Below, in pieces: positions 1,781 to 53,676 of a DNA stretch of 64,000 nucleotides (position 1 is the first letter of the stretch; each line of letters starts with the position of its first letter). The stretch covers positions 59,210,001-59,274,000 of the forward strand of contig NC_134473.1 in NCBI RefSeq assembly GCF_964194025.1. The letters run 5' to 3'. The stretch comes from Convolutriloba macropyga (Eukaryota). The notes beneath the pieces were generated by a model. That model saw only the letters and a program-made list of their open reading frames with translations, ran no database searches and had not been told where the DNA came from. The translations under genes were made by a program, and so were the position numbers.

Positions 1781-1821
1781 TAAACTTAGTTACAGATGAA
1801 TGGCATTAGACTTAGGAAAGA

Positions 1822-3265: not shown

Positions 3266-3830
3266 GGATCTGTTTCCTTAAACATCAATTTTATATAATA
3301 TAAAATATAAATTTTTGTTTTTCATAAGCCCATGCTAACGCACAATGAATAATACCAAACGATTGTTTACGCCATGATTAAGTTCAAATTTCGACTCGAA
3401 CCCGAGTTGTTATTTACTTCGAGAGGGTGATAAGAACCGCGTGGTAAATGTCTCTAATCAACTCTCGTTGCGATTACAACAGTTGCATAACTTATAAACC
3501 TGTGGAGCCGTTAAGACTATTTCTTTCCGTCGCTTTTTTCTCGCCACTCTTGTAGAAACAGTGGCGAGAAAAGAGTGGCCCAAAGAAGTAGCCAATTACC
3601 GAAGCAGAGATTTGTCGCTGTTTCAAATTTCCGAAGTATTCATGGGGCACTAATAGGTTATTCCGTAGATAAGTTGAGCACCTGCTGTTCTGGCGTCGAT
3701 AGTTGATTAATTGCAAATATTCTGATAGTACCAGCCATTATAGTTAATATACATTAAAAGTGCTCTACTAAATTATTAAATCTTTTATTGCAATATTGAA
3801 CCGTGGAAGAGGAAACAGTTCCGGCAAAAG
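3266..3830 (+). other. Putative non-canonical GG-AG intron (565 nt) with terminal inverted repeat, specific to paralog A
   Basis: Removal gives CAA AG|T CTA = RNQSLVD, matching RNRSLVD in B. Exons 2a+2b = 160+86 = 246 nt, exactly the exon 2 length of B and C. ggatctgtttcct (3266-3278) pairs with aggaaacagttcc (3810-3822). Confidence 0.7.
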
Positions 3831-3916
3831 TCTAGTTGACCTTGGCAACGAATTTGGTGGCAAGGACTTGGTTGAGATCAACAGGTTTGCGTTGAGGAAA
3901 CAGTTGAGAAACCAAG
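3831..3916 (+). CDS. GNAT paralog A, exon 2b
   Basis: LVDLGNEFGGKDLVEINRFALRKQLRNQ(G), homologous to the 3' part of exon 2 in B/C; ends at a GC donor (CAAG|gcatgt). Confidence 0.8.
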
Positions 3917-3999
3917 GCATGTTTCCCATCAAATTTGGTATGAATTGCGGACTGGCTAAAGATGGAAAAGATGATTAAAAGAGCGATTCAATGGTCAGA

Positions 4000-4571
4000 C
4001 GGTTACATGACAATTTACCCAATTCCATTTTACCCAATGCCAATTTACCCTACGCTATTTTACCCGACCTGCCATTTTACCCAATGCCATTTTACCCAAT
4101 ACCAACTTACCCAATGCTCTTTGATCTTTTTGTTCAATTATCCGATTGCAGTCGCCATTAGCAGTCGCTATTACAAGGATGGTTTAAAATGTTTGTGGAC
4201 AATATAATCTCATGTTCGGTTGTAATATTTTCATATCAAGTCCCACAGGCCATTTAATTATATAGTCCGCTAATTCCATGTTCGGTTGTAATAGTTTCAT
4301 ATCAAGTCCCACAGGCCATTTAATTATATAGTCCGCTAATTCCATGTTCGGTTGTGATAGTTTCATATCAAGTCTCACAGGCCATTTAATGATAAATTGG
4401 CTAATTCCATGTTCGGTTGTGATAGTTTCATATCAAGTCCCACGGGCCATTCATTTTATAGTCGGCTAAATAGTCGTTCTGGTTAATTTAGCAATGGGGT
4501 AAATTGGGTAAGTTGGCATTCGGTATAATGGCATTGGGTAAAATTGAATTTGGTAAATTGTCCTGACACCG
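4000..4571. mobile_element. Non-autonomous DNA transposon (MITE) with CGG...CCG termini, subterminal ccattttaccc repeats and an internal 66-bp minisatellite
   Basis: Imperfect TIR cggttacatgacaatttacc / ggtaaattgtcctgacaccg; 6-bp direct repeat GTCAGA on both sides (3994-3999, 4572-4577); ~4 copies of a 66-bp unit at ~4211-4465. Confidence 0.8.
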
Positions 4572-4975
4572 GTCAGACATGGTCGGATATTGCTTTAAAG
4601 ACCAGCAAAATTGCTTTTACGAGCATTTCTAAATAAAAAGTGACGTTTTTTAGGAAACGCATTTAGTACTGCTTATATTTTTAGAGAGGAAAATTTTTGT
4701 CGAGCAAAAATTGCAGAACAGCAAAACCTATCGTATTGAAAGCAAGCAAATATTCAGACAATTAAATTTTTACCATTCGAAGAATTAAACCATTAGTAAC
4801 TTCAGTTAATATCATGTTTCTTCTTCTTATTATTAGTAGAACACCAAACCTATAATATTGATTTGAAATATTGTGCTAGAATAATTTTTTTGCGCGTAAA
4901 TTTCAATGAACTGTTATCAAATTAATTTACGTTTCACATTTAAAAGAAACAAAGCAAAACACTGAAGCGCAAAAC

Positions 4976-5069
4976 ACCGACAGCTCTCTTGCATATCCGA
5001 CAGCTATCCTGTAATATCTTGCAATATGGTGCACGATCTTGCAAGATTCTTATAAGATAGCAGTCGGTA
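4976..5069. repeat. Short palindromic element (MITE remnant)
   Basis: accgacagct... / ...agcagtcggt inverted ends with internal tcttgca repeats. Confidence 0.45.
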
Positions 5070-5747
5070 ATAGACTAGGTCAATTTTCAGTTTAGAACTC
5101 AAACAAAATCGCAGCGTGTCACAGCATATCAGACAGGTTGAAGGCGGCGAAGGTTAATGGCGACGTGTTCTATTGTACTATCAAACACCCCAACTTTTTT
5201 ATTTTGTGCATCGTGTTTATGTTTATTAGCCGGCGTCAGCCTCTCAACGGCTCTTGGTTTTTTTCAATTCAAGGAATTCGAAATGTATTGGGGGCGTTGT
5301 CTTATTTTAAGATCTGTTCACACATTTTCATGATTTCTGAAGTCATAATGGAGTAGTGATTTTGGTCATGCCGAAACAGGAAATGGAGCGAAAAAGAGAG
5401 TGGTTTTGCGACATGAATTTTTTTCATTCGAATATTCAAGTACAGTAAAAAATCGTTATTTGATCGAAAATTCGCTTTCTGGCTAGTAGTTTTCTGTTTT
5501 TTTTTGTTCACATGCGACAATTTCACATTGATTTTTATTGTTTTTCAACTTTTTGGATAGGATTTTCTTCTAATTGGTTTTCCCAATCCATTCATACTTC
5601 CTTCTAGGCCTAGTATTTTGTTTGAACCAAATTTCCCTCTCTCGCAAGTGGTTTTTTGTTCACATGCGGCATTTTGACTTTGATTTTCTGTTTTTTAATT
5701 TTTTGATCTGATTTTTTTGGAAATAGTTTTCCCAATTCACTCCTAGT

Positions 5748-8060
5748 CTTATGATGAGATAGTTTGTGATTTGCAGAACCTTTGACTGGTGCTTGGAGCT
5801 AGAGGTGAACAAGAGCAGCAAAGGAATGAGAAAAAATGAGAGTCGCTGCCGAAAGCTGAAATGTGACTAAACAAACAATCTGGGTTAAAATTGAAGTAAT
5901 AAAATATATGAAATCAGTTTTCACGCAATTATCCTTGATTTGAGGTAAAATTGAGCTCCAACACTCGGGCTACTGTTGCCACAATCCCCCTGACGGGGAT
6001 AGAGAGGGATCGTGTAGGTTGGGATCGACAGACCTTCGTCCCGATATTTTCCGGGTATTTTTTCTCAAAATATGCGACAAAGTGATGCTTTTAAAATCCG
6101 ACAATTAGAGGAAACATTTCGCGTAGGTCAGAGCATCACCGGAAGAAGTGGCTTTTTCTCAGTTATTTTTTCGCGATAGATTGGTTTTTCGAAGTGATGC
6201 ATTTATTTTTTCTACTATGCGTTGTTTTGTCATGTGAGTTTGCAGCGGCGATTTTGCTTGCAGCTTCAATTTATGGGGGATTGAGTTCAAACGTGATACA
6301 AAGTTATTATTGAAGAGATGGCATGTTTTTTTGTATTAAATTGTATTGACCGTTTGTTCTCTCCGTTTGCTTGGTCAAAATTTAGAGACAGGAATGGTAT
6401 CAAGGCAAGTCTTGAGCGCTCACTGTGCACTTATAGTTACCCTAGTCGATAAGACTCAATAAAAATGACCAGATACTTGTAGGGAACATTTCATTTGTTG
6501 AGTTTCGAACGTAAGAAAGATTCGGGATGTTAACATAGTGACAAATAGCTACAGTTGAAAACTAAACCTAGGAATAATTTCATAGGTATCAAAAGTGAAC
6601 ATAATTACGATTTGAAAGAAAAAAACAAACCTGAGGTCTTTGTTTATTTTTTTAAACTAAAACAACATGCCTTAAGAGGACATATAATTGACTGTATTGA
6701 GTTGCGTATCTTTAACCAGACCGTTTTATGATGAGATGGTTTGTGATTTGCAGAACATTTGAATGGTGCTTGGAGCTAGAGGTGCACGAGAAATCAGTTT
6801 TCACGCAATTATCTTGATTTGAGGTTAGGTTGAGCTCCAGCGCTCGGGCTACTGTTGCCACAATCCTCCTGACGGGAATAGAGGGGGACTGGGTATGTTG
6901 GGACCGACAGACCTTCGTCCCGGTATTTTCCGGGTATTTTTTCTCAAAATATGCGAGAAAGTGATGCTTTTAAAATCCGACAATTAGAGGAAATAATTGG
7001 CGTAGGTCAGAGGATCAACGAAGGAAGTGGTCTGTTTCCTGTTATATTTTCGCGGTACATTGGTTTTTCGATGTGATATTTTTATTTTTTCTACTATGCG
7101 TTGTTTGGGCATGTGAGTTTGCAGCGGCGATTTTGCTTGCAGCTTCAATTTATGGGGGATTGAGTTCAAACGTGATACAAAGTTATTATTGAAGAGATGG
7201 CATGTTTTTTTTGTATTATATTGTATTGACAGTTTGTTCTCTCCGTTTGCTTGGTCAAAATTTAGAGACAGAAATGGTATCAAGGCATATCTTTTGAGCG
7301 CTCACTGTGCAATTATAGTTACTCTAGTCGATAAGACTCAATAAAAATGACCAGAAACTTGTAGGGTAAGAAAGATTCGGGATGTTAACATAGTGACAAA
7401 TAGCTACAGTAGAGAACTAAACGTAGGAATAATTTCTTAGGTATCAAAAGTGAACATAATTACGATTTGAAAGAAAAAAACAAACCTGAGGTTTTTGGTC
7501 GTTTTTTTAAAAATAAAACAACATGCCTTAAGAGGACATGTAATTGACAGTCTTGAGTTGCGTATCTTTAACCAGACCGTCTTATGATGAGATGGTTTGT
7601 GATTTGCAGAACCTTTGACTGGTGCTTGGAGCTAGAGGTGAACGAGAGCAGCAGAGGAATGAGAAAAAATGAGAATCGCTGCCGAAAGCTCAAATGTGAC
7701 TGACCAAACAATCTGGGTTAAAATTGAAGTAATAAAATCTATGACATCAGTTTTCACGCAATTATTCTTGATTTGAGGTAAGGTTGAGCTCCAACACTCG
7801 GGCTACTGTTGCCGCAATCCCCCTAACGGGGATAGAGGGGGATCGGGTAGGTTGGGACCGACAGACCTTCGTCCCGATATTTTGCGGGTATTTTTCTCAA
7901 AATATGCGACAAAGTGATGCTTTTAAAATCCGACAATTAGAGGAAATATTTGGCGTAGGTCAGAGGATCAACGAAGGAAGTGGTCTGTTTCCTGTTGTAT
8001 TTTTGCGGTAGATTGGTTTTTCGATGTGATGCATTTTTTTCTACTATGCGTTGTTTTTTT
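5748..8060. repeat. Tandem array of ~0.86-0.98 kb units (about 2.5 copies) in the last intron of paralog A
   Basis: ttatgatgagat(a/g)gtttgtgatttgcagaac recurs at ~5749, ~6726 and ~7582, each followed by hundreds of near-identical bases. Confidence 0.9.
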
Positions 8061-8406
8061 TGTGAAATTTTTAAATTTAAATTGTTTCTGCTTTTCTGAG
8101 TTTCTTCTCATAGGACCTGGGATATTATGAGAACGGTCATCACCGTCTTTTTTGGCGCTTTTTTTCTTTAGAACGTAGGATAGGAAATAATTTCGTTTTT
8201 TCTTTAGAGCTAGGTTAAGAAAAAAAAATGGCGTGTGTGTGTGGTTGTGAATATTGCAATTTTGGAAGTTTGTGAATTTTGGATGAGAAAGATTCTTTCA
8301 TTAATAACATCCTGAATTGACTAGGAAAAACAATAATGTTAATTATTTGGCTGAGAAAGTGACATAAAACAGGTTTCTAGCGGATGTGGGAAATTTGCCA
8401 AAAAAG

Positions 8407-8786
8407 GAGTTGGACGCGAAATATTGAATATTGCACTTGACATACATCGATGTCTGTGGCCGGATCGACCTCTACTTTACACGACTAATGTGAAAGTTAC
8501 GAAGGAACACGTAATGAACAAACTAGTAGAAACTCAACCAAATAGGTTTTCGCTTCAAATCTTCGGAGATCCTTTTCGATACGAAGAACACGATCCACAT
8601 TATTGCCATACTCATATATTACGGAACAAGTTTACGAGTAATAGCGAGTTTTTATCAGATTCTCAATTCAGAAAAGCTTTGAACCATTCATTGCCAATTA
8701 CAATAGTGAGTTATAAAGATACTGGTTCTTCGCCAAATGAGAAGCAAAATTTTATCTTCGGAAATGTTGCATGGCAAATGAAATAA
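8407..8786 (+). CDS. GNAT paralog A, last exon
   Basis: (G)VGREILNIALDIHRCLWPDRPLLYT...FGDPFRYEEHD...; homologous to the last exons of B and C; TAA stop. Confidence 0.85.
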
Positions 8787-18794: not shown

Positions 18795-18999
18795 ATGAGA
18801 TCCGCTCTCAAACACCAGTTGTGCACTCTCTCTTCGTCTCTGAAGAACGTAGTTTATGTGGTAACAAATGCCAACCACACTCCAGATGTTGTTTCTGTTG
18901 CCGGCAGTATCCTATATGATGTCTACATCAAAGAATTGGGCTGGAAGTTTGGCAAGGACAACCCATCGCAAATCAGAGTTGAACGTTGCTCAAAAACAG
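18795..18999 (+). CDS. GNAT (LuxI/FeeM-like) acyltransferase paralog B, coding exon 1
   Basis: MRSALKHQL...GSILYDVYIKELGWKFGKDNPSQIRVERCSKT; close paralog at 38441; donor ACAG|gtggat, phase 1. Confidence 0.85.
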
Positions 19000-19887
19000 G
19001 TGGATGATAAGGAACTAATTCAAACCGTTCTTAAAATTGTAAAAACAGATTCAAAATTATAACAGAGATCAAATAATTTATTTACGAGATCAAAACTATC
19101 ATTGAGTTGCGCAGTTTCCGTTGTAGACATTTGGAACTATTTTTAAGGGTGAATTGATTTGTTCGGTTGAAAATTACTCGAAAGCAAGAAATGTAGGGAG
19201 ACACTAAAAAATTTCACTTTCAATCCAGACATTTAACCAGTGATTTATTGTTGAAATTGAACAAATACTGATAAATACAATTAACTACAATTAAGACTAA
19301 GGTTTTTAATTTGATTGAAGAAATTCGTTTAGTACTTTTACTGCCGTTTGAAGGCACCAGGCATGAAGTGAAGCGATGCTCTTATTGGCTACAGGATACG
19401 GTTTTATCATATTTTTTTCCAGATCTGCTCAATTTCAAAGCTGGGAGAAACATCTTTCGGTATAGGGTAGCGGATAAGAAAGCAATCCACAGTTGTGAAA
19501 GCGTTTCTCGACTTTTTTGGTGTTTCTAGCCAAATTGAATACTGCTCATTTTTTAAAAGGCCCCATATGTTTACCGCAAAAATTTTTGGATAGCAAAGTG
19601 TGTCACATTTTGCGATGCAAAATATTAGAAATCACCGAAAAACCGAAAGCTGACATTGATTGAAATTTCATACGGAAAAAATAGATAGTTCGGTTGTCTT
19701 GAAAGGGACAGCCAGTTGATTACATCAGCAAGGAGTTTGAATTTTAGACGGTTGTAAACTTCGTCAATATTTTTAGCCTTTTAAATTTTTCACCATATTT
19801 GAAATAGATCATTTATCATTTCCAAATACCTCTCAAAACTATACGGCCAAGGGATCATTACTTCTTGTCCTTATTAAAAACATATTT

Positions 19888-20114
19888 CCCGGGCCGGGGC
19901 GTCCACCCGTATTCCACCGTTATTAAGCGAGAATAAGGGTGTAAAGCCAATTCCACTCTTAATTAGCAAGGAAAAGTGTGTAAGAGTGTAATTTTAAGAA
20001 AATTACATCTTTTCGTATACTTTTTGCACTCTTTGGTCCACTCTTAATACATTTTCAAAAATACACTATAATTACACTCTTTTGTCTACTCTTTAATGCA
20101 CTCTTTTCCCTGGG
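19888..20114. mobile_element. Short CCC...GGG MITE with acactctt repeats; related copy at ~55094-55300
   Basis: cccggg...ccctggg ends; shares aagagtgta...ttttaagaaattacac with ~55180-55220. Confidence 0.55.
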
Positions 20115-20630
20115 TGAAGCCTCCTGAGAGGTGTCTCAGATCGATCAAAGCAAAAAATTATGTAAGATATTATTATTATTATTACTGAATATTATTATTA
20201 AAATCATTATTATTTAAAAAATACTCAAGAGAAACGCGAAATTAAAGAAAAAATTAGCAATTTTTGCCAATACTAGTTTTTGTGGTAAATTCCTCGGCCC
20301 GAGTTCAGATGTACATTTAAAATCAAAGGACTCCTTGAGGGTTAAAATAGGAGCAAAACTATAAAAAAACATCAATGTTGATATCTTCCCTCAACTTCAC
20401 GCTCAATTACTGCACAGGGGTATGAATGCTTGTTAAAGCAATCTAAAACTGATCAGAAGTAGCTTTTAGCTGCGAAGGGCTGAGTAGAGGAAGTTTCGAC
20501 TCGAGAAACATCATTGCCGCCAGTGTCCAAAAAAACTATTTATTTTCTTTTTATTTCAAACTGATTATTATCAGTGTTCCACTCAGACACTATAGTGTTC
20601 CTTATCATCATCCTAAAATTTTTTTGAAAG

Positions 20631-38440: not shown

Positions 38441-38645
38441 ATGAGAGCAGCTGCTAGACACCAATTGCTTACTCGTTTTTCATCTCTGAAGAATGTACTC
38501 TATGTGGTAACAAATGCCAGTCACACTCCAGATGTGGTGTCAATAACTGGCAGTATCCTCTACGATGTCTTTATCAAAGAACTGGGCTGGAAATTTGGCA
38601 AGGATAACCCTTCAAAACTCAGAGTTGAACGCTGCTCAAAAACAG
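38441..38645 (+). CDS. GNAT (LuxI/FeeM-like) acyltransferase paralog C, coding exon 1
   Basis: MRAAARHQLLTRFSSLKN...ILYDVFIKELGWKFGKDNPSKLRVERCSKT; 205 nt as in B; same donor. Confidence 0.85.
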
Positions 38646-40536
38646 GTGGATGATAGGGCACTATTTTGGAACATTATTTTCCTTTTTGAAGAGGAAACAT
38701 GAAAGTTCATGTTCAACCGGGTTCTATTTCTTTTTTACGCCGATTTATTTTACCCCCGCAAACTTTTCAGTCCAAAACCAATTCCCAATATCTTACGTAT
38801 CTCCTGTTTTCGGTGTAAATACCTAAATGCTGTACACAATTCCCAATCTTTTAAGTTAATCGTACCAATTATTTAAAGCATTATGGTTGGAGTGAATCAA
38901 TCGGTGGTAAATAATAGGGTGTCAAATAAATAGGGGCAAAAAACGGTCAACCTCATAACCAATAAGTTCAGTATTAGGAATATTAACAACAATCAGTATT
39001 TACGAATTGCCTGTTAAAAAATGAAACAAGGGCGGCTGTTCGATTTTGCGCTTATATATAAAGTGATACGAAATGCTCTTAATTTTTCATGTTGGTTGGT
39101 AAGGAGGTCGTTTAAACTCTTCTTGAAACACTTCTCGTGGGTCTTTTCAATCTGGCACAGGATTCGGTTTTGGATCTTCTTAGTCTGGCCAAGGGTACAG
39201 TCAAAGTTTGCTGTCTGGCTTATACATAAATTTTATTAGGTGCGAGCTGCACCCCCTTTTGCGCGAAGCAAGTCCGGCTGTTCCAAACCTCTCTTTTGGG
39301 TCGAGGATCACATCTTTTAGATGTTAAAAATTCTACTGCTAAATATATTTAAACATCACAAATTTACGTTCCGAGACATTAACAGCTGTTTAATTTACAA
39401 TTGCCAATCTGTTGTTTACTTGATTGGCCTAGCTTAGAAAATTTCAAAAAAGGAAAAAAAATGGAAGTAGGTTGTGAGTATAGGATTCTTTCACACCGGT
39501 TCTGAGAATTTTGCACCAAAAAAGCGGAAACAAAAAAGTACCCACCACGAATCCAGAATTTGAGACTCAAAAATGGGTCACTGAAATTTCAAAGTCATGG
39601 AGTAGTTCAAGCCTGTCGAACTTTTCGAAAATGTCTCAAATTTTTCTCGACAAAATATCAACGACCCGCAAAAACTTCACAAGAAAACTGTAATTACACT
39701 TTGTTTAGGCTTTGATTTTTTAAAAATTAATTTCTTAAAGGGGAGGCCGTACATTATTTAACTATGAGAGCAACAATAAACAGATTTTCAGAAAAAACAA
39801 AATTAATAATAAATTGCTTTCAATTAGGCCATGAGCATTACCATAATTAACCAAGCTACAACAAAGCACAACCCACTTGCTAAGTCATCGAAAGGTCCTT
39901 ACGGTCCTAGTAGAATGATGCCAAGAAGAAGCACTAAGGTTTATGGGAGATTTTGTTCGTGAGAAGAAAAAAATCAGGGTAGATAAAAAAAGAGAGTGGA
40001 GACATCTTCTTTATTGACAAAATAGTTATCGTAGTTATTACTAAAATTATTATGGAAAATTTTTTCTTGGTTTTGCTTAAGTTTTTGCTCTTTTTTAAAG
40101 AAATCAGGTTAAAGTTTTAGTATGAAGTTTAGTAGTTTTCGAATGCTCTTTAGGCTGAGAACGCTCACAGTGTTAGTTAATTTTAGTGGTCGCGCTTTTG
40201 TTCTTGTTGACTGAACAGTTTCTGTCTCTTTTTTTTTGTTGTAAGGTCATCAAGAGAACTGATTTCAAAGTTTTTCTCTTAGTATTTCAATTAGTTTTTT
40301 GATTAGTAGATTTTTGACAAAAAAAGTACAACACAGAACTGTCAAACCAAGTTAATAATAAGCATCTCATCTGATATATAGAGCAAATACTTGACCCTTT
40401 TGTTCAAACAAAAGGAAACAAGACGTCTGGCATGGTTCTTTGAGTGCCACAAATCGTTGCAACAATCGTATTTGAAAGCATTATAACAACATATCGGAAT
40501 GGAATTCGAAACGTTTATATTAGAAATGGGTTTTTG

Positions 40537-40695
40537 GGATCTCCTCCGTTTATCCACCCAGCTTAGTGGGTGCATATTATTTGCACCCCCACAAACGCAG
40601 GTGCCGTAAATTTACATAATGATTTACTAAGTACTGGCATGTGCTCTGTATCAGTCGAGCGCATAACGTACTGGGGGTACAAAAGGGAAAGATCT
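40537..40695. mobile_element. GGATC-ended MITE (family with cccagcttagtgggtgcatatta core)
   Basis: ggatctcctccgttt...gggaaagatct ends; core shared with the copies at 55877, 57807, 59947 and 60194; a fragment also at ~41680-41810. Confidence 0.75.
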
Positions 40696-41971
40696 TTTTT
40701 ATGTTTGAGCAAGCTTCTCCGAAAAAGCTAACTCTTTTCTATATAAATCTGAAAGAAAAGAAACCGATTGAGTTTTCGGAGGAACTAAAACAGCCTGATA
40801 ATCTTTATGTAACAATGAATTTTTCTGCGCTTTTTTGAATTTAGTTACGAAAAAAGTGGTGCAATGATGAAAACACAAACGAAAGAAATCTAAATATTTC
40901 CATTGAAGGTTTTGATTTTGCTTCATCACTTAATCCGGTCTATGTTTTTGAACTTCAACAGACTTTGAGAACTTCAAAACGGCAATTATCATATTTTTAA
41001 GCCGCTTTACAGATGTTTTACGTGCATGACATCATTTAACACTGAGTGGCAGTGAGTTTTAGCTGGGAATATTTTTTCATCAATTAAATCATTTAACAAC
41101 TCTTAAACCACTCTACTTGAATTTTAACACGAAAGTTAATTTGACCAAAATTTACTCCAAATAAAATTCAATAGAGGACCTCTACTCAATGAAAAATAAC
41201 TAAAAATGCATCTGAACTCAGTTTTAAGGACCATTTCGATTTTTTAGAAAAAAATATTTTCCGAAAGAAAATTTGAACAATTGAACTAGAATTGTTAGAT
41301 CGCGTCATCGACTCCATTAAGAGTTTTGTTTCTGTTTCTGTCTCTGTTTCTTTATTCAACAGCTTGCTATTCGTTTAATTAAGCAATATGCCAGCTATTT
41401 TTATGATTTTTGTAAATTTTTATAGACAATCTTTTTTCCAATTGTTTGACAAATTAATTGTGAGCTGCATCAGTTTTTCATGATCTGATCCGTCAGAGGC
41501 AATATTGAAAACAAAAATATGCATTTTAGGTACAATTATCAGCCTAAAAATTCTAAACAGGTGTACCTTCATGGTGTGATCAGAGGCCATTTTTTCTAGA
41601 AACTTGACTCGGGAAGCATCATTGTTGACACAAAAAAATTTAAAAATTCAAAAAGTTTCAAAAGGTTAAAATACAATTAAGCACCCCAATTACAGAGCAC
41701 GCACGTGCCATTGCATAATAAATCACTATGGAAAATATGGCACGTGCTCTTGTGGGTTGCAAATAATGAGCACCCACTAAGCTGGGGAAGCACAGTATAC
41801 CAGAAGATGCGCCGTCTTGTATCAGTCACCCGAACTTGTCAAATTCTTACAAGATAACCATCTGTTCTGACTAGTGCCTTTTCTAGTTTTTCATAAATTT
41901 TTTTCAAAGAACTTCAATAGCAGGTTTAATACCAAAGCGTTCCTTATCATCCTAAAAACTTACGCCAAAAG

Positions 41972-42217
41972 ACAAAATGATACTGGTGGACAAGTTTGCG
42001 TCAACATGTCTGTGGATTGTGGCATGTGAACGAACCAGTAACGGCGGAAGGATAGAGCCCAATGGTTGCTTCAGACTTATACATTCTACAGAAATCGAGG
42101 TTTTGGGATATCAAAGCCAGCGAAACAGAAGTATTGTCAATTTGAGAGAAGTTTACGGTGGCAGTGGCTTAGTTGAGATGAACAGAATAGCATTGAGGAA
42201 GCAGTTGAGACACAAGG
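41972..42217 (+). CDS. GNAT paralog C, exon 2 (246 nt)
   Basis: (D)KMILVDKFASTCLWIVAC...PNGCFRLIHSTEIEVLGY...LVEMNRIALRKQLRHK(G); acceptor ccaaaag|AC, donor AAGG|gtacag. Confidence 0.85.
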
Positions 42218-45200
42218 GTACAGTTTCCCCCCTTAGCTTAAAGTTCAAACTTTTGGTGACAAATTTGACCAATTTCATAGGTTTCCTCATTACCCACATA
42301 CAACGTGAACAAAATATGATCAAAGAGAATTGGTAATGTGCGTTTGCACATAATGTTCGAAGACTTCTTTTTGATAAAATTGTATATCAATTGAAAGCTC
42401 AGATCTTTTCGTTCGCTAAAAATGGACCAATTAAGGAGGTGGGGACACAAACGGCAAATATCCTGAAAGTTAATATTTATCCTCGAGTTAATCCTGTCTG
42501 AATTAATTGAAAACAACCAAATCTTTCCTTATGTGCCCTTTGACCAGTAACAGTAAACAAGCTTGACGGTTTGCTTACTTCCAGAATGATTCTAGTGGCA
42601 TATCTTTTTTCAAAAATTTATTATAAATTTAAAATAGTTTGCATAACTAGATCACAAAGACCGCTTTCATCGATTTTCCATAAACAAATTATCTTGGAAC
42701 TGAAATTTAAACTCGAACTAGATGTTTTAGTTCGGAATATTTTAACGAGAATCTGCTTTCTTCTTCAATATATTAGACCAAAACAGGTATCATTAGTGAA
42801 AGTTTATAGCATTTCTTGGACAAAAAACGAGTTACAAAAAACAGTTTTAAAAACTCTCAAAGATTTCAACCCTTTTAGACAGTTTGACAATGGCGTCTAC
42901 CGATTGGCTTTAAAAAATACGCTGTAATTTTTACGGGTTGAAATACACTTTCATAAAGTCTACGACAACAGTGATAGACTATTTCCGGTTTATTTTTGAA
43001 AATAAGATTATTTTAGCTGCTTTCTTTTGGTACAATGGAAATTAACTCTTAGGAGACGAGCCTTGCAATAAATCTTTATCTAAGGAAGATGTGATTTTCA
43101 AGAAATCTTCCTCAAGGTAAGTAAAATTCCTCTTGAAAAGCAGGATTTCTCTTGTCTCGCTTGATTCTATAGATATACCATATAAAAATACATCTCAAAT
43201 GTTTTTTTTTCAAACAAATAAACTGCTCAGAGAAGCGGTGATTGTCTTGAGCAGTATACTGGTTTAATTTTTAAGACAGACAGATACATCCACAGAAACA
43301 CTTTATCATTAGAACTCAGTTGCTTGCTAATGAAAACCTACCAAGTGTTTGATTGAATTCAACGTACTGTTGCCTAAATTGGTGCAGGTCAGCTGGCCTT
43401 TATTTTTTTCCATTTATTTTCCTCTGCCATACATCGTTAAAATTAATCCACTGGGCCGAATAAATTGAACGTATGAGCTGAAACTTAAATCGCGTCTCTG
43501 AATAGCCATCTAAACTGTAAATTTTTGGTAAATCTTGAATAGTTTTGGCCTCATTATAAAAGTATGTACAATCAAGTTCAATCAAATCAAAAAGCATTAA
43601 TAAATAAAAGAGAAAGTTTGATTCTAGAAAGAAGAGTTATTGCTCCTGTTTATACAGTTTTTCCATTCAAACCAATTGATTGCTCTTTTTGCTGGGAGAC
43701 AATTTAGGCACCGGGATAGCTTTCGTTGGCTCTGCTTGTTTTAATGCTTATTCTTGGTGTTCTTGGCTAACATCGTAGCTGTTGATTTGTTCGTTGTTTT
43801 TCCATGTGCGGTAAGATATCAAATAACATTTTTATTCGTAAAATAGAAAAACTCGTCAATCAATTTTAAGAATTCAACATGTGAAAGCGAAACGAAGATA
43901 TATAAAGATGGACTGAAAAGAAAAGAAAAATAAAGCTCTCTCGTGGTGGTGGGGTTGAACTACAGCCTCCGGGTTGAACTACAGCCTCCGGTTTGTTCAC
44001 ATAAAAAGACCGCTGCTCATCGAGTGTTTGCTTCAGCAGCAGAGATGTGTAATTGTGTTTCGAAAAATAAGGCTTATTACTAAAAAAACAGCGTAAAAAA
44101 TAGTCTTCTCGCCGGGTGAGGATCGAGCCTCTGCGACCCCGTTGATCATAGGATTAGAGCACTGTGCAACAACTCGCTGTTTTAGTTGTAGAAATTGCAA
44201 TTATGTTTATGAAGGCAAGCGTTAAGACTCGTTCAAATGATTTGAGGGAAGGTAAAAAGAAGTTCAGTTATTACAGTTAATAACTTGAAAAAAGTAAAAT
44301 TGTAACAAGTAGAAAAACAAACTAATCATAAGAAGGAAAATAACAGGCAGTAAAAACTGCTATGCTAAACCAAACCTCAAAACCTTTGAACCGTACCGCG
44401 CATATTACTATATAATGTCGTTACTTGTATAACGATAACTCAACCGTGATAATGATATCATTGAAATGATTTTGAAAAATAAGAAGGTTGTCTTGGTTGA
44501 AAATGAAACTATTCGATTAAGATGATATTTTTTAATTGAGTTTCTTGGTGTTTTGCTAATGATGTTGAGATTTTCCAATTGATAAAAACTGAGCAATCTA
44601 ATGGTGTTTTTTCGTGTGTTTTTTACAGACAAACTCCGATTACACTAGGTGAGCGGCTGGCTTGGCTGCAATATTAGGACAGAACACGTGTTTGTTTGAA
44701 ATTTGGCTCGAATTAAGTAAACAAGCGGCTAGCAATAAATCATTGGCTGATAGCTGTTCTACGAGATACGAACTGGAATGTAGACGAAATAAACAAAATT
44801 AAGAAGACTGCATGATATTGCTCTCACGCCAACCATTTTCCACTGCTTCTTTCCTTTCGTTCCGAAATCATTAACCGTTTGGCCATTGTAATCTGATTGT
44901 TTTTTGATGTCGACAGATTTTTCTCGTCAGTAGTAACTTGGCAATGTCGTCATTGATAAATGAAAAGAAGAAACAAAGGCAAGTAGGCTGTTTTCGCTGT
45001 GACTCCGACCATCGCTTTCTGTGTCAGTTAACGAACTAGCTTGGCAGAGCCTCCGAGCCATTCCGAACTCTTCTGAGTTGCTTGCGCGGCAATTTTTATA
45101 TAGAAAATGTGTGTTCTCATGACGTTATTTGTAATGGGTTTCGTTAGCGAGGTTCATACCACTGGTCTGAGGGAAAAGGAAACTGAAAATTTTTTTTCGA

Positions 45201-45229
45201 GTGTTTGACCAAGTTGGTAGTTTACCTTT

Positions 45230-46900
45230 ATTCACGACCTCCGGGATGGGCTGAAATAGTAGACAGCTGTTTCTTTTTCATCTTTAGCAGGACAGAAGGT
45301 CCTTTTGATAAATGTTTTTCAGACCATGTATTTTTTTCTGGACAAGTTCATGTTTTGATTCGATCTTGTTTACTTTCGCGCGTTTCGGGTAATTAATTGC
45401 TAATTTGATCTGAATAACCCTTACAGCAGGTGCATTGTCCCCTTCATGGAGTTTTTTGACACTGTATGAGCGGGGTTTTCTTAATGTTCTATTTTGGGTT
45501 AGTTGTATTTTGGTGATAATTGAATTAGATTGGAGAATGCGGCAGGTATTTGCATAAAAAAATTGAGATCGAACCCATGATTTATAGAGAGTTAGCAAGC
45601 ATTTGTCATCAATGTTGATTCGTTTGAGTACCCACAGTCAGTAGATTAATTTGTTAGCTCTTGCCACCGACCTTTTAAGTGTTGGTTCTGTTTGAGATAA
45701 AGGTTAGGTGTTGCGCAATAAATTTTATTGAGCTTGCTTCTTCAATTCGTTTACCATTGATAAAAAGATCTAGAGTGGAGTCCTTTTTTGGCAGGTTTTT
45801 AAAATTGTAACTTGCATTGCCAGGATTTTTACTTATTTTCAAGTTTTCGCACCATTTAACTAATTTGTCTTCTGAATATTGAAGTTTCTCTTGTATTTTT
45901 TTTACAGGAGAGCGACCTGTAATAAGGGGCAAAATGAACGGAAAAATGAAAAAGTTGTGCAAGTAAATGAGATTTTCTGTTGACATAAACCGGGAAGAGT
46001 ATTGGTGCAATGGCGCTACCCTGAAGTACTCCCGCAAGTGTTGAAAATGTGCTACTTTTCAGTTATTGATTTTCACAATGATACTAATTTGGGAGAGAAT
46101 ATGGTTCACCCTTTTAATCGCAAGTTAATGAAAAAGAATATTTTACAGTTTGTTTTGATTTCCTAGTCTCCACACTGCATCAGACGCTTTTCAAAACCTA
46201 TGCAGACAAATCCCCCCATTTCGGACCATTGAAACGCTTATTTAATGTGACTAGTTAGTTTGAGCAGGTTATCGGTTGGGCAGCGGTTTCTTCTATACGC
46301 ACTTTGCATTTTGCCGAAGACACCATTGTTTTCACAGTGCGTTAGATCAATATAATTTAGAACAGTTCCACAATTTTTTGCAGTTGAATTAGTTAAGGTG
46401 ATTGGTCGGTAGTTCTCTGACTTTTTTTGTTCGTCTTTTGCAATTTTGAAATATAACCTTTTCCGCGTAATTGGAACATAAGAACTGTTGATAGAGCTAG
46501 TTATCAGCAGACAGATATTTACTTTGAGGCACTTAGGTGACCTGTTCATCATGTTATAGTTGATCTTCTCTGGTCCTGGACTTCAACTACTTGTTTTTTT
46601 CAAAATTTCTTCGAATTGGTCTACTTTTATATAACAATAGATAGTTGGTTTAATTTCTTCGTTTCGGAGAAACGGTTTTGTCTCATTTTTGACCTTCTCG
46701 AAGTCGTATTTATGATTTTTTATTGTTACTTGTTTTAGAGGTTTTGAACACTTCGCATTTTTCATTGTCTGTTGTCGCTCTGAGTTGCTTATAAAAGGAA
46801 AGACTTCTGCACTTTGATCAGTTTCATTTGATTTTGTGTAAACCTTGAATAACATGTAATAAAACATTGAGTGTAATTTAGAAAGATAAATGTTTCCCTA
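45230..46900 (-). mobile_element. Highly degenerate non-LTR retrotransposon RT fragment, antisense in the last intron of paralog C
   Basis: KSENYRPITLTN, QSAYRRNRCPTDNL and TLYKSWVRSQFFYAN are spread over several broken frames; boundaries approximate. Confidence 0.8.
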
Positions 46901-48239
46901 CAAGGTGGCAAAGAGGAGGCGATTGTAGAAAGGAGCCTCCTATCACACCCGTAAATAATCAATTTTTTTGAGCCCCTGAACAATTAAAGTTGTTCATCCT
47001 CTGGAAAAACTCTTTGTTACGAGCGGGTTTGATCAGTTCACTCAGAAATGCGTCTTGGAGAAAAGCCCAGACACAAGTAAAGGTGTATATAAAACAAGAG
47101 TTTATCGTTAAGATAAATTCATTACATTTAATAAAATTAATGGATTTTTTCATCTTTGCTGATTTCGTTATATGCTTTGTGGATAATCCATCAATGCGTC
47201 ACTCTTAGGAAGGTGATGTTGAAAAATATATGCCCGTATTAGTTGATTTTTAGCGCAACCTTATTTGGAATACAAAGATTTGTACAAATGGTAGAGTGAA
47301 TTTGAAAATGAACGGTTGGGAGTATTTGAACTAGTTTAGGGTTGATATGTAAGGTAAAATGGTTTTTGTAATTTCTCAAAACGTTGTCTTAACTTTTTTC
47401 ATCCAAAAACTCTTATTCCATATGTATATCAAATACACGATGGTACCGAAAAGCTACATACACCTGAAGATTATTTAAAAAGCATTACAAACATCAAATA
47501 TTACAACATTTTGAGTTCAAGTTTGTTCTCTAATAACACGTCATTACATTTTAGCTTTTTTTAACGTGTAGCAGACAGTTTGTTTGTATAGTTTTCACCC
47601 AGGTTTCTAATGACATCTGGGTCAGTTTCGTTCTAAATTTTTTGACATTTTATGGTCTAAATTTTCTCAAAAAACGGTCTGTTTTCGCAATTGCTGCTTC
47701 AAAACTGCCTATACATTTTCAGTTGGATTTAAATCTGCACAAAATGCCGGCCATCCGGATTTCCTTCTCTTGAAAAAATAGCCGATAAGATTCGATTTAT
47801 GCACAGGAGCCTTTTTTGAAAAATTAATGAGCTGAAAGTACATTTTTTCTTCGTAATTTTTCAAAATTTGCAATTAGTCAGCAGTGATTAGCTTGCTTGG
47901 ACACCAAAAAAACCTTTGCTGTCCATCTGATTGTAGTGCACTCCAAAACATAAGTGATCGTGCTTCGGAATTTAACCTTTTTGTGTTTTTATTTTCAAGC
48001 AATCTCGTTCCATTTCTACGAAAAACTCAAATAATTCCGACGCTGGAGATAAGCGCCCTTTTTTCATAAGCAAAAACAACATTATGCCAGTAAAAGAAAG
48101 ACTGCTTGAGCATATTGACACGCCAAATTGAACCAAAACACTTCATTTTTTTCAAACTGACTTCCTTTGCGGCATTTCTTAAAAGAACACCAAAATTCTT
48201 GAGAATTCGTCTATTTTTAGGGTTGGAGATTGTATCGCA

Positions 48240-51200
48240 GCAGAAGACAGCGTTATGAGTAACTCCAGAGAGGTTTTGGGATCCTGTAAACATCCTTAGC
48301 CAATTATTCTGTCGGTTTCTTTGACAATTTTCGAGACTTTTTGCTCAATTTTTTGGCCTCGAACCTGTTAGTTTTTAGATAACGTTTCTATGTATGATGC
48401 GCACGGGATCATTATTTCAAGTTGAGTTGTCTTTGTATTTTAAGAACAAGGAAACTCGACATCTCGTAGCGTAGCAGCTAGGCAAACAGCGAAAGAACAA
48501 AGCGGTTTATCCATCTTTTCTGCTCAAGAGCAGGAAATGAAAAAAAATCTTTTGAAACTTCTACACTTCACAACTTTTGTACACGCCTTAGCGGAAATTA
48601 TGTTTATGAGGCACGAATCATGCTTTCAAATAAGCTGGAAGTAGCTTTTTAGTACCATAGTGTAAAATCATATGTTGTTCAGAGTTTGAACAATTATCGA
48701 GCTATTCCCGCAGGACGCTGTATCGCCTTGCAAGACAATCGTCCAAAAAATTGCGACAGCCATTCAATTTTGCACAAAAATTTCGTAGATTTTTTTCAGT
48801 TTCCTGACTTAGTTTTGATTTCGGCTTCTTTTTCACCATCTCAGTCATGCTTAGGACAAGAAAATCCTAATTGAAACGTAGATACAACTTTAGTTTTTTC
48901 GACGAGTGCAAATACCAAATTCGCGACAGTCATTTTTACGCTAAATGAACTTAAAGCGCTGATTTTTTCAAATATTGTTGCTAAATTTAAATCAATGGAG
49001 CTACTCCGTACAGCGTCAGGGCAACAATTACCAGTGCCAAAAAATATTCAATACGTCAAAATGTCATTTTGTTAAAATGCTCAGACAGCCAATTTAGCAT
49101 AAAAATGCTTAAAGCGAGATAACTTATATCGGAATAACGTATGTTCACAACTATTGTATGTAAATTTGATTAAATTGGCCATAATTGAGTGGACCGTATA
49201 AAGACTTTATGTGAAACTATGACAAACAAAGATGAAATCACATTATCAACTTAATTATGATAAAAATAAGCTATTAATACCAACTGCTAATTAGAATTTT
49301 GGATTTACTACAAGATCAACGGGGAAAAAATTAGGTTTTATGGGATAGGGTATTCTTGACATTGAGAAAATTGTCAGCTCCAGAGAGCTTTTTCGATCCT
49401 TTAAAATTTCCTAGCCGACTTTGTTCGTCTTTTTCTCTGATAATTTTTGAGGTTTTCCGCTCAATTTTTTGGCCTCGAAATTGTTAAATTTTAGATAACG
49501 TTTGTATGTATGATGTGCACGGGATCATGATTTCAAGTTGAGTGGTCTTTGTATTTTAAGTACTTGGAAATTCGACATCTCGTAGCGTAGCAGCTAGGCA
49601 AACAGCGAAAGAACAAAGCGGTTTATCCATCTTTTCTGCTAAAGAGCAGGAAATGAAAAAAAAATCTTTTGAAACTTCTACACTTCACAACTTTTGTACA
49701 CGCCTTAGCGGAAATTATGTTTATGAGGCACGAATCATGCTTTCAAATAAGCTGGAAGTAGCTTTTTAGTACCATAGTGTAAAATCATATGTTGTTCAGA
49801 GTTTGAACAATTATCGAGCTATTCCCGCTTGACGCTGTATCGCCTTGCAAGACAATCGTCCAAAAAATTGCGACAGCCATTCAATTTTGCACAAAAATTT
49901 CGTAGATTTTTTTCAGTTTCCTGACTTAGTTTTGATTTCGGCTTCTTTTTCACCATCTCAGTCATGCTTAGGACGAGAAAATCATAATTGAAACGTAGAT
50001 ACAACTTTAGTTTTTTCGACGAGTGCAAATACCAAATTCGCGACAGTCATTTTTACGCTAAATGAACTTAAAGCGCTGATTTTTTCAAATATTGTTGCTA
50101 AATTTAAATCAATGGAGCTACTCCGTACAGCGTCAGGGCAACAATTACCAGTGCCAAAAATATTCAATACGTCAAAATGTCATTTTGTTAAAATGCTCAG
50201 ACAGCCAATTTAGCATAAAAATGCTTAAAGCGAGATAACTTATATCGGAATAACGTATGTTCACAACTATTGTATGTAAATTTGATTAAATTGGCCATAA
50301 TTGAGTGGACCGTATAAAGACTTTATGTGAAACTATGACAAACAAAGATGAAATCACATTATCAACTTAATTATGATAAAAATAAGCTATTAATACCAAC
50401 TGCTAATTAGAATTTTGGATTTACTACAAGATCAACGGGGAAAAAATTAGGTTTTATGGGATAGGGTATTCATGACATTGAGAAAATTGTCAGCTCCAGA
50501 GAGCTTTTCGATCCTTTAAAATTTCCTAGCCGACTTTGTTCGTCTTTTTCTCTGATAATTTTTGAGGTTTTCCGCTCAATTTTTTGGCCTCGAAATTGTT
50601 AAATTTTAGATAACGTTTGTATGTATGATGTGCACGGGATCATGATTTCAAGTTGAGTGGTCTTTGTATTTTAAGTACTTGGAAATTCGACATCTCGTAG
50701 CGTAGCGGCTAGGCAAACAGTGGAAGAACGAAGCGGTTCATCCATCTTTTCTACTTAAGCGGAGGAAATGAAAAAAATATTCTCTTGAAACTTCTAAATT
50801 TCACAACTTTTGTTCACGCCTTAGCGGAAATTATGCTTATGAGGCAGGAATCATGCTTTTAAATATGCTGGAAGTAGCTTTTTAGTATCATAGTGTATAA
50901 TGATACGTTGTTCAGTGTTTGAACAATTATCGAGCTATTCTCGCAGGACGATGTATCGCCTTGCAAGATAATCGACCAAAATATTGCGACAGCCATTCGA
51001 TTTTGCACGAGAATTTCGTAGAATTTTTTTCAGATTTCTAACTAAATTTTGATTTTGGCGTCTTTTTCACCATCTCAGTCATGCTTGGGACGAGATAATC
51101 CTAATTGAATCGTAGGCACAACTTTATAGTTTTTTCGACGAGTGCAAATAACTAAATTTTGATTTTGGCGTCTTTTTCACCATCTCAGTCATGGAAATTC

Positions 51201-53590
51201 GACATCTCGTAGCGTAGCAGCTAGGCGAACAGTGAAAGAACGAAGCAATTTATCCATCTTTTCTGCTTAAGCGGAGGAAATGAAAAAAAAGTGTATAATG
51301 ATACGTTGTTCAGTGTTTGAACAATTATCGAGCTATTCTCGCAGGACGATGTATCGCCTTGCAAGATAATCGACCAAAATATTGCGACAGCCATTCGATT
51401 TTGCACGAGAATTTCGTAGAATTTTTTTCGTATAATTTTTGAGGTTTTCCGCTCAATTTTTTGGCCTCGAAATTGTTAAATTTTAGATAACGTTTGTGTG
51501 TATGATGTGCACGGGATCATGATTTCAAGTTGAGTGGTCTTTGTATTTTAAGTACTTGGAAATTCGACATCTCGTAGCGTAGCGGCTAGGCAAACAGTGA
51601 AAGAACGAAGCGGTTCATCCATCTTTTCTACTTAAGCGGAGGAAATGAAAAAAATATTCTCTTGAAACTTCTAAATTTCACAACTTTTGTTCACGCCTTA
51701 GCGGAAATTATGCTTATGAGGCAGGAATCATGCTTTTAAATATGCTGGAAGTAGCTTTTTAGTATCATAGTGTATAATGATACGTTGTTCAGTGTTTGAA
51801 CAATTATCGAGCTATTCTCGCAGGACGATGTATCGCCTTGCAAGATAATCGACCAAAATATTGCGACAGCCATTCGATTTTGCACGAGAATTTCGTCGAA
51901 TTTTTTTCAGATTTCTAACTAAATTTTGATTTTGGCGTCTTTTTCACCATCTCAGTCATGCTTGGGACGAGATAATCCTAATTGAATCGTAGGCACAACT
52001 TTATAGTTTTTTCAACGAGTGCAAATACCAAATTCGCGAAAGTCATTTTTACGCTAAATGAACCTTAAGCTCCGATTATTTTAAATTTTGTTTCTAACTT
52101 TAATCCAATGGAGTTACTCCGTACAGTGTCAGGACAAATATTAGTAGTGCCAAAAATATCCAATACGTCAAAATATCTTTTTGTTAAAATGATCAGACAG
52201 CCAAATTAGCATAATAATGCTTCAAGCGAGATAACTTATAACGGAATAACGTATGCTCAAAACTATTGTTGTAAAACTGATAATTTGGCCATAATTGAGT
52301 GGACCGTATAAAGACTTGATGTGAAACTATGACAACCAAACATAAAATCACATTATCAACTTAAGCATGATAAAAATAAGATTGTAATACCAACTGCTAA
52401 TTAGATTTTTGGGTTCACTAAAAGATCAACGGTAAAAATTTAGATTTTATGGGATAGAGAATTTTTGACTTTGAGTAAATTGTCAACTCCAGAGAGTTAT
52501 TGGGATCCTTTTAACATTCTTAGCCAACATTTTTCGTCTTTTTCTCTGCCAATTTTCGAGAATTTCCGCTCGATTTTTTGGCCTCGAAACTGTTAATTTT
52601 TAGATAACGTTTGTATGTATGATGTGCACGGGATCATGATTTCAAGTTGAGTTGTCTTTGTTTTTAAGTACATGGAAATTCGACATCTCGTAGCGTAGCA
52701 GCTAGGCGAACAGTGAAAGAACGAAGCAATTTATCCATCTTTTCTGCTTAAGCGGAGGAAATGAAAAAAAAATCTTTTGAAACTTCTAAACTTCACAACT
52801 TTTGTACACGCCTTAGCGGAAATTATGTTTATGAGGCACGAATCATGCTTTCAAATAAGCTGGAAGTAGCTTTTTAGTACCATAGTGTATAATGATATGT
52901 TGTTCGGTGTTTGAACAATTATCGAGCTATTCTCGCAGGACGATGTATCGCCTTGCAAGATAATCGTCCAAAATATTGCGACAGCCATTCGATTTTGCAC
53001 GAGATTTTTTTTTCAGGTTCCTAAATAAATTTTGATTTTGGCGTCTTCTTCACCATCTCAGTCATGCTTGGGACGAGAAGATCCTAATTGAAACGTAGGC
53101 ACAACTTTATAGTTTTTTCGACGAGTGCAAATACCAAATTCGCGAAAGCCATTTTTACGCTAAATGAACTTTAAGCGCCGATTTTTTTCAAATAGTGTTG
53201 CTAACTTTAATCCATTGGAGCTACTCCGTACAGGACAAAAATTACCAGTGCCAAAAAAATATCCAATACGTCAAAATATCTTTTTGTTAAAATGATCAGA
53301 CAGCCAATTTAGCATAACAATGCTTAAAGCGAGATAACTTATATCGGAATAACGTATGTTCACAACTATTGTATGTAAAACTGATTAATTTGGCAATACG
53401 TGAGTGGACCGTAGAGGACTTGATGTGAAACTATGACAACCAAACATGAAATCACATTATCAACTTAAATATGATAAAAATAAGCTTGCAATACCAACTG
53501 TTAATTAGATTTTTGTATTCACTAAAAGATCATTGGGAAAAAATTAGGTTTAATAATTAAGATAGGGTATTTTGGCATTGGGTAAATTGT
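48240..53590. repeat. Tandem array of ~1115-bp units (~4.5 copies, with an internal rearranged partial unit) in the last intron of paralog C
   Basis: cgacatctcgtagcgtagc at ~48457, 49573, 50688, 51200, 51565 and 52681; the first two units are nearly identical. Confidence 0.95.
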
Positions 53591-53676
53591 CATCTAACTT
53601 TTTCGTACGCATTGGAAGGCAAAATATATGGGTGTTTGAGAGAACAAATTTGGGGGAAAGTACTCTGAACAAATAG

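Follow-up and report, generated by a model that had tools for sequence, protein, structure and literature searches.

Complementary intron ends in three tandem paralogs of the acoel Convolutriloba macropyga

Introduction

The locus described here raises the question of how the two ends of an intron are brought together when the donor is weak and the acceptor region lacks a pyrimidine tract. It lies in a 64,000-nt stretch of the Convolutriloba macropyga genome (assembly GCF_964194025.1, contig NC_134473.1, positions 59,210,001 to 59,274,000 of the forward strand), which is called the window below and is numbered from its first letter. The window holds three tandem paralogs, A, B and C, all on the plus strand. 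Each of the six introns that lie completely within the window has a 5' end that is complementary to a site just upstream of its 3' end. A sequence-only reading of the window, made by a model without database searches, had taken the genes for GNAT genes and had proposed that an RNA clamp defines some long introns of this organism instead of strong U1 and U2AF signals.

The six helices are far beyond chance. The introns are real and nuclear. Their G..AG termini, which none of them lacks, and the transcripts that they share with a normal intron make removal by the ordinary spliceosome very probable. The interpretation favored here, with moderate confidence, is that these are spliceosomal GN-AG introns with selected hairpin ends that were probably born with inverted repeats.

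Terminal helices of the six introns

The six introns are as follows.

3266..3830, plus strand: A-extra intron, 565 nt, GG..AG, found only in paralog A, where it divides the single exon of B and C
3917..8406, plus strand: A-last intron, 4,490 nt, GC..AG, with satellites and a tandem repeat of ~880 nt inside
19000..20630, plus strand: B-1 intron, 1,631 nt, GT..AG
20877..26572, plus strand: B-last intron, 5,696 nt, GT..AG
38646..41971, plus strand: C-1 intron, 3,326 nt, GT..AG
42218..53676, plus strand: C-last intron, 11,459 nt, GT..AG, with a 1.1-kb tandem array at 48263-53592

The helices were computed with RNAduplex between the first 18 nt and the last 40 nt of each intron. They consist of Watson-Crick (WC) pairs and a few G-U pairs, and each 3' arm is followed by a short tail.

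3266..3279, plus strand, intron +1..+14: A-extra 5' arm GGATCTGTTTCCTT, 13 pairs (12 WC and 1 G-U) with 3809-3822, -20.3 kcal/mol
3809..3822, plus strand: A-extra 3' arm GAGGAAACAGTTCC, then an 8-nt tail GGCAAAAG
3917..3929, plus strand: A-last 5' arm GCATGTTTCCCAT, 12 pairs (10 WC and 2 G-U) with 8386-8398, -16.3 kcal/mol
8386..8398, plus strand: A-last 3' arm GTGGGAAATTTGC, then an 8-nt tail CAAAAAAG
19003-19015 and 20597-20609, plus strand: B-1 arms, 13/13 WC, -20.7 kcal/mol, 21-nt tail
38648-38661 and 41939-41952, plus strand: C-1 arms, 12 WC, 1 G-U and 1 mismatch, -19.2 kcal/mol, 19-nt tail
20877-20888 and 26548-26559, plus strand: B-last arms, 4+6 WC around a 2x2 internal loop, -16.3 kcal/mol, 13-nt tail
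42218-42231 and 53652-53663, plus strand: C-last arms, 4+8 WC with a 2-nt bulge, -17.7 kcal/mol, 13-nt tail

All twelve arms that the sequence-only reading had located are present where it placed them, and their pairing was verified. The 5' arm starts at +1 in the last-position introns and in A-extra, and at +3/+4 in intron 1 of B and C. Each helix is about 12-14 bp long, and 8-21 nt lie between its 3' arm and the 3' splice site. The 8-nt tails place any branch point in or upstream of the 3' arm. The helix sequences at the intron-1 and last-intron positions are unrelated to each other. In an Rfam scan of the window, there was no match.

When the first 25 nt are paired with the last 45 nt, the duplex energies of the six introns range from -17.9 to -23.7 kcal/mol. 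In 5,000 random window pairs the mean is -7.6 kcal/mol (standard deviation 3.2), which gives p = 0.0004-0.006 for each intron. Non-cognate donors and acceptors pair strongly only within the same paralog class. When the first 20 nt were matched against the whole intron, no other site paired as well as the terminal one in four of the six introns (A-extra, A-last, B-1 and C-1). B-last and C-last each have one stronger internal partner, that of B-last being near 26450. The 5' arms of gene A can also pair with exon 2b (a1 x b2, -16.1 kcal/mol; a2 x b2, -12.9 kcal/mol). The cognate partner is the strongest for every arm, these cross-pairings included.

Removal of the gene A introns from RNA

Four runs from the same organism were compared over positions 2950-8900. 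Three are DNA-like, with even depth, and one, X1, is transcriptome-like. In X1, depth is zero across all unique intron bins. An X1 contig joins 3913 to 8404 and skips 4,490 nt, with four letters shared at the joint. The sole canonical-like placement of this joint is GC..AG at 3917-8406, and the GC-AG intron A-last is precisely removed from RNA.

At A-extra, X1 has one contig for each of two alleles, with depths of 25.6 and 69.6, and both stop at 3265 with one further letter that is unmatched. The contig that follows in X1 (depth 95.4, against a summed depth of 95.2 upstream) begins at 3834 and continues into the A-last joint. Depth is zero at 3547-3745 inside the intron. The depth in bin 3348-3546 is due to a 36-nt repeat at 3455-3491, the contigs of which continue into sequence unlike the flanks. 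Together, the contig ends, the equal depth and the zero interior depth indicate that A-extra is absent from the mRNA of both gene A alleles, both of which are present in X1 at the two depths given above. The GG-AG intron A-extra is almost certainly removed from RNA, as implied by the contig ends and the zero interior depth. The contig ends fit two candidate acceptors, one at 3830/3831 (AAAG/TCTAG), which is in frame, and one at 3835/3836 (TCTAG/TTGACC), where a stop codon would stand right after the junction. If the X1 contigs come from a 31-mer unitig graph, as is assumed here, the use of two acceptors would explain both the unmatched letter and the second contig's start at 3834.

Gene A exon 1 is joined to exon 2a at 3105/3106 in X1 RNA. 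A third X1 contig carries the sequence that precedes 3104, which is located 13 kb upstream in an assembly contig of the European Nucleotide Archive (ENA). The junction check that had been proposed for all six introns is answered in part, for gene A, where the A-1 junction (of the intron upstream of exon 2a) and the A-last junction are seen and the removal of A-extra is implied. In the DNA runs, a second haplotype is visible, with at least 13 listed differences within ~250 nt (window 2994-3242).

Conservation of the helices

Between genes B and C, the synonymous divergence (dS) is 0.68, the ratio of nonsynonymous to synonymous divergence (dN/dS) is 0.23 and both frames are intact. These values indicate that both genes are functional, under purifying selection, and that their duplication is old. 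In a BLAST comparison of the two loci, the exons align together with ~150 nt of the 3' untranslated region (UTR), and the similarity reaches no more than 21-37 nt into the introns at either end. The alignable intron ends contain the arms, and the rest of the 1.6-11.5 kb introns is unalignable. The arms are ~89% identical between B and C, and the intron-1 3' arm is identical at 13/13 positions. Neutral 13-mers at a dS of 0.68 would be ~55% identical.

The pairs themselves vary among the paralogs. At intron position +2, B-last and C-last have a U-A pair, A-last a C-G pair and A-extra a G-C pair. The last-intron helix is altered on both sides between A and B/C, and its innermost core pair is A-T versus C-G. 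A-last and C-1 contain G-U pairs, which RNA accommodates and duplex DNA does not. The pattern suggests that the helices are under selection. The removal of the GC and GG introns from RNA, given their complementary ends, suggests, short of proof, that the pairing helps splicing. On the second-haplotype contig L002 (1-9900), only the C-last 3' arm was recovered, and it has a G to T change at its innermost pair (window 53652).

Splice-site signals and the stemless intron A-1

The donors of the six introns in the window are GT in four, GC in one and GG in one. Position +1 is G and the last two nucleotides are AG in all seven introns of the family, A-1 included. The termini are GT-AG in five of them and GC-AG in one. 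The A-extra cut has five equivalent placements, none of which begins with GT, GC or AT, and GG..AG is the best of them. A-extra is the only truly non-canonical intron among the six. U2-type termini (GT or GC..AG) are found in five of the six introns in the window and in A-1, and the GG..AG of A-extra falls outside this class. In the U12-type consensus, the 5' splice site is RTATCCTT and the branch site, TCCTTAAC, precedes the 3' end by 10-15 nt. On direct reading, ATCCTT is absent from all donors and TCCTTAAC from all 3' regions.

The pyrimidine fraction of the acceptor region is 0.30-0.35 in A-extra and the three last introns, which makes these regions purine-rich, and pyrimidine tracts are absent in four of the six introns. 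The description of the acceptors as A-rich is thereby upheld. The donors, described earlier as poor U1 matches, are plain GT in four of the six introns.

The A-1 intron is GT-AG, ~12,970 nt long and spliced in X1 transcripts. It has the same position as B-1 and C-1 and lies mostly outside the window. No intron of the family exceeds A-1 in length, and the A-1 donor, GTTGAT, is weak and no better than the others. Of the B-1/C-1 helix, only 6 bp (TGATGT/ACATCA) are left in A-1. Its acceptor has a pyrimidine fraction of 0.55, with CCTGTTTC, versus 0.30-0.35 in A-extra and A-last. This contrast, a single comparison, fits a helix that compensates for an absent pyrimidine tract. Since A-1 is spliced without a stem, the stem is dispensable for long or weak-donor introns; and since A-extra is only 565 nt long, the stemmed class is independent of intron length. 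A-1 also holds a long interspersed nuclear element (LINE) with reverse transcriptase and endonuclease open reading frames (ORFs), and window positions 686-2867, on the minus strand, are part of that LINE.

Origin of the introns

A-extra is paralog-specific, its exon being uninterrupted in B and C, and is present on both haplotypes. Among the introns, it alone has the distribution of a recent gain; the other two intron positions predate the paralog splits. Terminal inverted repeats are present, as in introners and miniature inverted-repeat transposable elements (MITEs), yet the 3' arm lies 8-21 nt from the intron end. Direct repeats of 4 nt span the junctions of the non-GT introns (AAAG at A-extra and AAGG at A-last), and those at the GT introns are only 1-2 nt long. 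Longer similarity between the exon end and the intron end reaches significance in A-last alone (p 0.008 in a 40-nt window), and it is not robust, with p 0.07 in an 80-nt window under other scoring.

The first 12 nt of the A-extra 3' arm, GAGGAAACAGTT, repeat the end of exon 2b without a mismatch (3809-3820 = 3896-3907). The copy stands at an equal offset from the junction (p 0.0015). The exon end to the left of A-extra, GAGAAACCAAAG (3254-3265), is nearly identical to the end of exon 2b, GAGAAACCAAG (3906-3916), in A and not in B or C. These similarities suggest that A-extra arose by copying of the neighboring exon/intron junction. For this intron, a local duplication or template switch is no less likely than insertion of a MITE.

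Three other origins were considered and rejected. A-extra as a copy of A-last is not supported by intron-only similarity, which lacks significance at both ends (p 0.21 and 0.64), and the similarity of the junctions (p 0.0005) comes from the exonic GAGAAACCAA. An origin by tandem duplication, in which the intron start resembles the start of the downstream exon, is unsupported, with a marginal match in C-1 only. A long target-site duplication at B-last and C-last, where a 10/14 match is seen by eye, is unsupported by shuffling tests.

The interiors contain several repeats. The 36-nt piece at 3455-3491 in A-extra is ~92% identical to 55736-55771, is multi-copy in the DNA runs and is found in other X1 transcripts. 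In A-last, satellites with 15/30-nt and 66-nt units and a further segment occupy 4007-4557 and 5139-5735, with a k-mer depth of 10^5 against a baseline of ~50, and the ~880-nt unit occurs three times at 5746-8057. The tandem array of C-last (48263-53592, period ~1.1 kb) is longer on contig L002.

Gene family and exon layout

The frames of gene B (248 codons) and gene C (253 codons) are intact. B and C each have two GT-AG introns at identical positions, and both positions are common to gene A. In gene A, exon 2 is interrupted by the 565-nt insert at 3266-3830; once this is cut out, exon 2 is in frame again and aligns with B and C. Gene A exon 1 was located with contig L004, an ENA assembly contig that is identical to the window.

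L004 19365-19179, minus strand of the locus, ~13 kb upstream of window position 3106 and outside the window: gene A exon 1, from X1 RNA contig sequence
3106..3265, plus strand: gene A exon 2a, from tblastn against B and C (70-72% identity); X1 contigs cover 3104-3265 and stop at 3265
3831..3916, plus strand: gene A exon 2b, from tblastn; X1 contig 4 spans 3834-3913 and joins 8404
8407..8786, plus strand: gene A exon 3, stop codon included, from the ORF; X1 contigs run from 8404 to 8882
18795..18999, plus strand: gene B exon 1, from the gene model with the intact 248-aa frame
20631..20876, plus strand: gene B exon 2, from the gene model and tblastn
26573..26868, plus strand: gene B exon 3, stop codon included, from the gene model
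38441..38645, plus strand: gene C exon 1, from the gene model and tblastn
41972..42217, plus strand: gene C exon 2, from the gene model and tblastn
53677..53987, plus strand: gene C exon 3, stop codon included, from the gene model; the called ORF P0001 is identical on two ENA assembly contigs

Genes on the minus strand with mis-read intron borders were ruled out by the intact plus-strand frames and the RNA support.

The motif ILYDV[YF]IKELGW and an RxxGxG across the exon 2/3 junction recall GNAT-fold N-acyltransferases, a resemblance that was confirmed by no tool. Pfam searches with single exons gave no match, GNAT included, and a protein-atlas look-up gave only noise. Exon 3, compared with 1.8 billion representatives, matched only ORFs of the same genome and repetitive-protein noise. 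Exons 2 and 3 as queries in word-index searches recovered nothing beyond ORFs of the same genome. The name GNAT, which had been given to the family, thus goes back to the motif and finds no backing in Pfam or in relatives outside the genome.

The similarity of B and C begins just 3 nt 5' of the ATG (18792 versus 38438), and no promoter or 5' UTR is common to the two genes. In both, an AG stands there (ACAG/AATG and AGAG/AATG). This AG directly before the start codon may be a candidate spliced-leader acceptor. The published spliced leader of S. roscoffensis matched nothing in the window, a result that says nothing about the species.

Discussion

In the favored interpretation, inverted repeats would have been present at the birth of these introns, either through an insertion with inverted ends or through a repair or duplication event. 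The birth of A-extra would have partly copied the neighboring exon/intron junction. Selection would then have kept the helix, which would draw a weak, often non-GT donor next to a purine-rich, tract-less acceptor region. By holding the donor beside the branch/acceptor region, the helix would replace part of the U1-U2AF bridging across the intron. The stem would assist splicing and not be indispensable to it, because splicing of the same transcripts also removes A-1, a stemless intron of 13 kb whose acceptor is richer in pyrimidines. The proposed RNA clamp acting instead of U1 and U2AF is kept in part by this interpretation. The introns are real, the stems are conserved and the tracts are lacking in the last introns and A-extra, but A-1 is spliced without a stem and four of the six donors are GT. 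A stronger version makes the helix the main device for pairing splice sites, with the 3' arm as a private, cis-acting stand-in for U1 and with +2 free if its partner covaries. This version is tentative and rather doubtful. If it were true, introns would be of a GN-AG kind, pyrimidine tracts would be dispensable and splice sites would be defined in a distinct way genome-wide in a bilaterian.

Several points weigh against the favored interpretation. The six cases amount to about three independent ones (the intron-1 position, the last-intron position and A-extra). The earlier count of six of six is correct in that all six pair beyond chance, and is reduced by this dependence and by the seventh intron, A-1. 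The latter is spliced without a terminal helix, and its duplex of -8.5 kcal/mol lies at the 35th percentile of random pairs. The helix contains the 5' splice site, with arms that start from +1 to +4, so the donor is buried. A donor that is buried in a helix usually hinders U1 binding in known systems. Some conservation beside splice sites is expected in any case. Shifts of register come easily in the last-intron helix with its C/G and T/A runs, which weakens the argument from covariation somewhat. No orthologs from other species for a covariation test were found in the searches with exons 2 and 3. There are no further copies of any arm within the 64-kb window. The interior of A-extra has single-copy depth in the DNA runs, apart from the 36-nt high-copy piece, and no multi-copy element is evident. 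The RNA evidence covers the introns of gene A, and the introns of B and C rest on gene models. Finally, the contig ends suggest a second, frame-breaking A-extra acceptor at 3835/3836.

The helices may instead be neutral relics of the terminal inverted repeats (TIRs) of transposon-derived, introner-type introns, with conservation that reflects ordinary splice-site constraint or old gene conversion. The paralog-specific A-extra, with its inverted ends and its 4-nt direct repeat at the junctions, is what such a history would produce, and the spliced, stemless A-1 retains a 6-bp remnant as decay would leave. Neutral relics would not be expected to keep arms at ~89% identity against ~55%, in introns that are unalignable beyond 21-37 nt, nor to preserve pairing through changes on both sides between A and B/C. 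The window has no second copy of an arm and no multi-copy interior was found, and a 3' arm that lies 8-21 nt inside the intron with tails of variable length is unlike a fixed target-site duplication. This explanation is unlikely. A regulatory role, in which the helix hides the 5' splice site (slowing or gating splicing, or setting up competing partners) or ties the cis donor to its acceptor and thereby guards internal acceptors from spliced-leader trans-splicing, is quite improbable. It would account for the buried donor, for the competing structures that the gene A 5' arms form with exon 2b and for the two A-extra acceptors, 3830 and 3835, that the contig ends suggest. Trans-splicing is also at hand in the acoel S. 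roscoffensis, with 30% of its genes trans-spliced (PMC9911081). However, the cognate pairing is the strongest for each arm, the X1 transcripts are fully spliced with an intron depth of zero, and trans-splicing at these acceptors is without evidence.

Structure-guided excision without the spliceosome, as in euglenids, would explain the terminal pairing together with the non-canonical GG donor. It is very hard to reconcile with seven introns that are all G..AG, of which five are GT-AG and one is GC-AG, or with the removal of the stemless GT-AG intron A-1 from the same transcript. The nonconventional introns of euglenids are without conserved GT/AG termini (PMC11170887). The least credible explanation is an artefact of chance or paralogy, in which a single accidental complementarity was spread by gene duplication. 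The reduction of six cases to about three gives it some room. Against it stand the unrelated helix sequences at two positions with a third in A-extra, the p values of 0.006 or lower for each intron, the terminal sites that rank first or nearly so across kilobases of intron, and the retention of the helices at a dS of 0.68. Spliceosomal introns with selected hairpin ends therefore remain the favored interpretation.

The closest known layout is that of the introner elements of the dinoflagellate Amoebophrya, in which inverted repeats of 8-20 nt link the 5' and 3' ends of the intron (Farhat et al. 2021, PMC7789003). The termini of these elements are non-canonical, direct repeats of 3-5 nt overlap the borders between exon and intron, and some canonical introns are laid out in the same way. 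The hairpin has been proposed to join the exon borders (PMC7789003). The introns described here are similar in their stems of 12-14 bp and in the 4-nt direct repeats at the GG and GC introns. They differ in that G..AG is invariant and +2 alone is free, and in that 8-21 nt separate the 3' arm from the intron end. They are also up to 11 kb long and old (shared by paralogs at a dS of 0.68), no repeated families were found for them, and their host is a bilaterian.

The tunicate Fritillaria borealis, as summarized in a preprint, has transposon-derived non-canonical introns, less than 10% of its introns are GT/AG, the termini are very diverse, and splicing neutralizes gene-disrupting insertions (bioRxiv 10.1101/2025.08.15.670264). 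A-extra is comparable in being paralog-specific, in having inverted ends and in restoring the frame when removed. The present introns differ in that their termini are GN..AG and most of the stemmed ones are GT-AG, and the A-extra 3' arm copies a neighboring exon and not a known element. In euglenid nonconventional introns, terminal base pairing joins the ends, a transposon origin has been hypothesized, GT/AG is lacking at one or both ends, and removal is suspected to be independent of the spliceosome, with circular products (PMC11170887). Terminal pairing is common to both, but the invariant G..AG of all seven introns sets the present family outside the euglenid class. Of the parallels that had been suggested, the one to introners holds for the inverted ends and direct repeats, although no repeated family was found, and the one to euglenids fails on the termini that define the class. 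The same source describes, as background, spliced-leader RNAs in which the 5' splice site is presented within an intramolecular helix (PMC11170887). If the 3' arm is a stand-in for U1, it would be comparable to that donor helix.

Intramolecular pairing between splice signals is also a feature of yeast and fish introns. In long yeast introns, pairing between the 5' splice site and the branch point was reportedly described by Goguel and Rosbash in 1993, with arms downstream of the 5' splice site. In the structure-dependent splicing of teleost fish, the arms are said to be (AC)n and (GT)n. The fish study describes an RNA structure that replaces the need for U2AF2 (Lin et al. 2016, PMC4691745). 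In both systems complementary end segments bridge the splice sites and offset weak protein-mediated recognition, a role that the present helices may share; the last introns and A-extra are also tract-less. Unlike the fish introns, with their simple-repeat arms, and unlike those of yeast, the present introns have arms of unique sequence that include nucleotides of the 5' splice site.

A search of the literature turned up no description of paired-end or non-canonical introns for acoels. The present case is set apart by the invariant G..AG with a free +2, by unique arms that include the donor, by the offset 3' arm and by long persistence in a bilaterian. RNA evidence, evidence of selection from paralogs and a stemless counterexample are the additions made here.

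An acoel class of helix-closed GN-AG introns would add a second animal lineage to those with hairpin-ended introns. It would be a cleaner case than the known ones, in that the invariant G..AG points to the normal spliceosome and +2 varies with its partner. Such a class bears on how far RNA structure can substitute for recognition by U1 and U2AF. It also bears on the conversion of gene-disrupting insertions into introns and on the long-term persistence of helices. Gene predictors that allow only GT-AG introns will mis-annotate genes in this genome.

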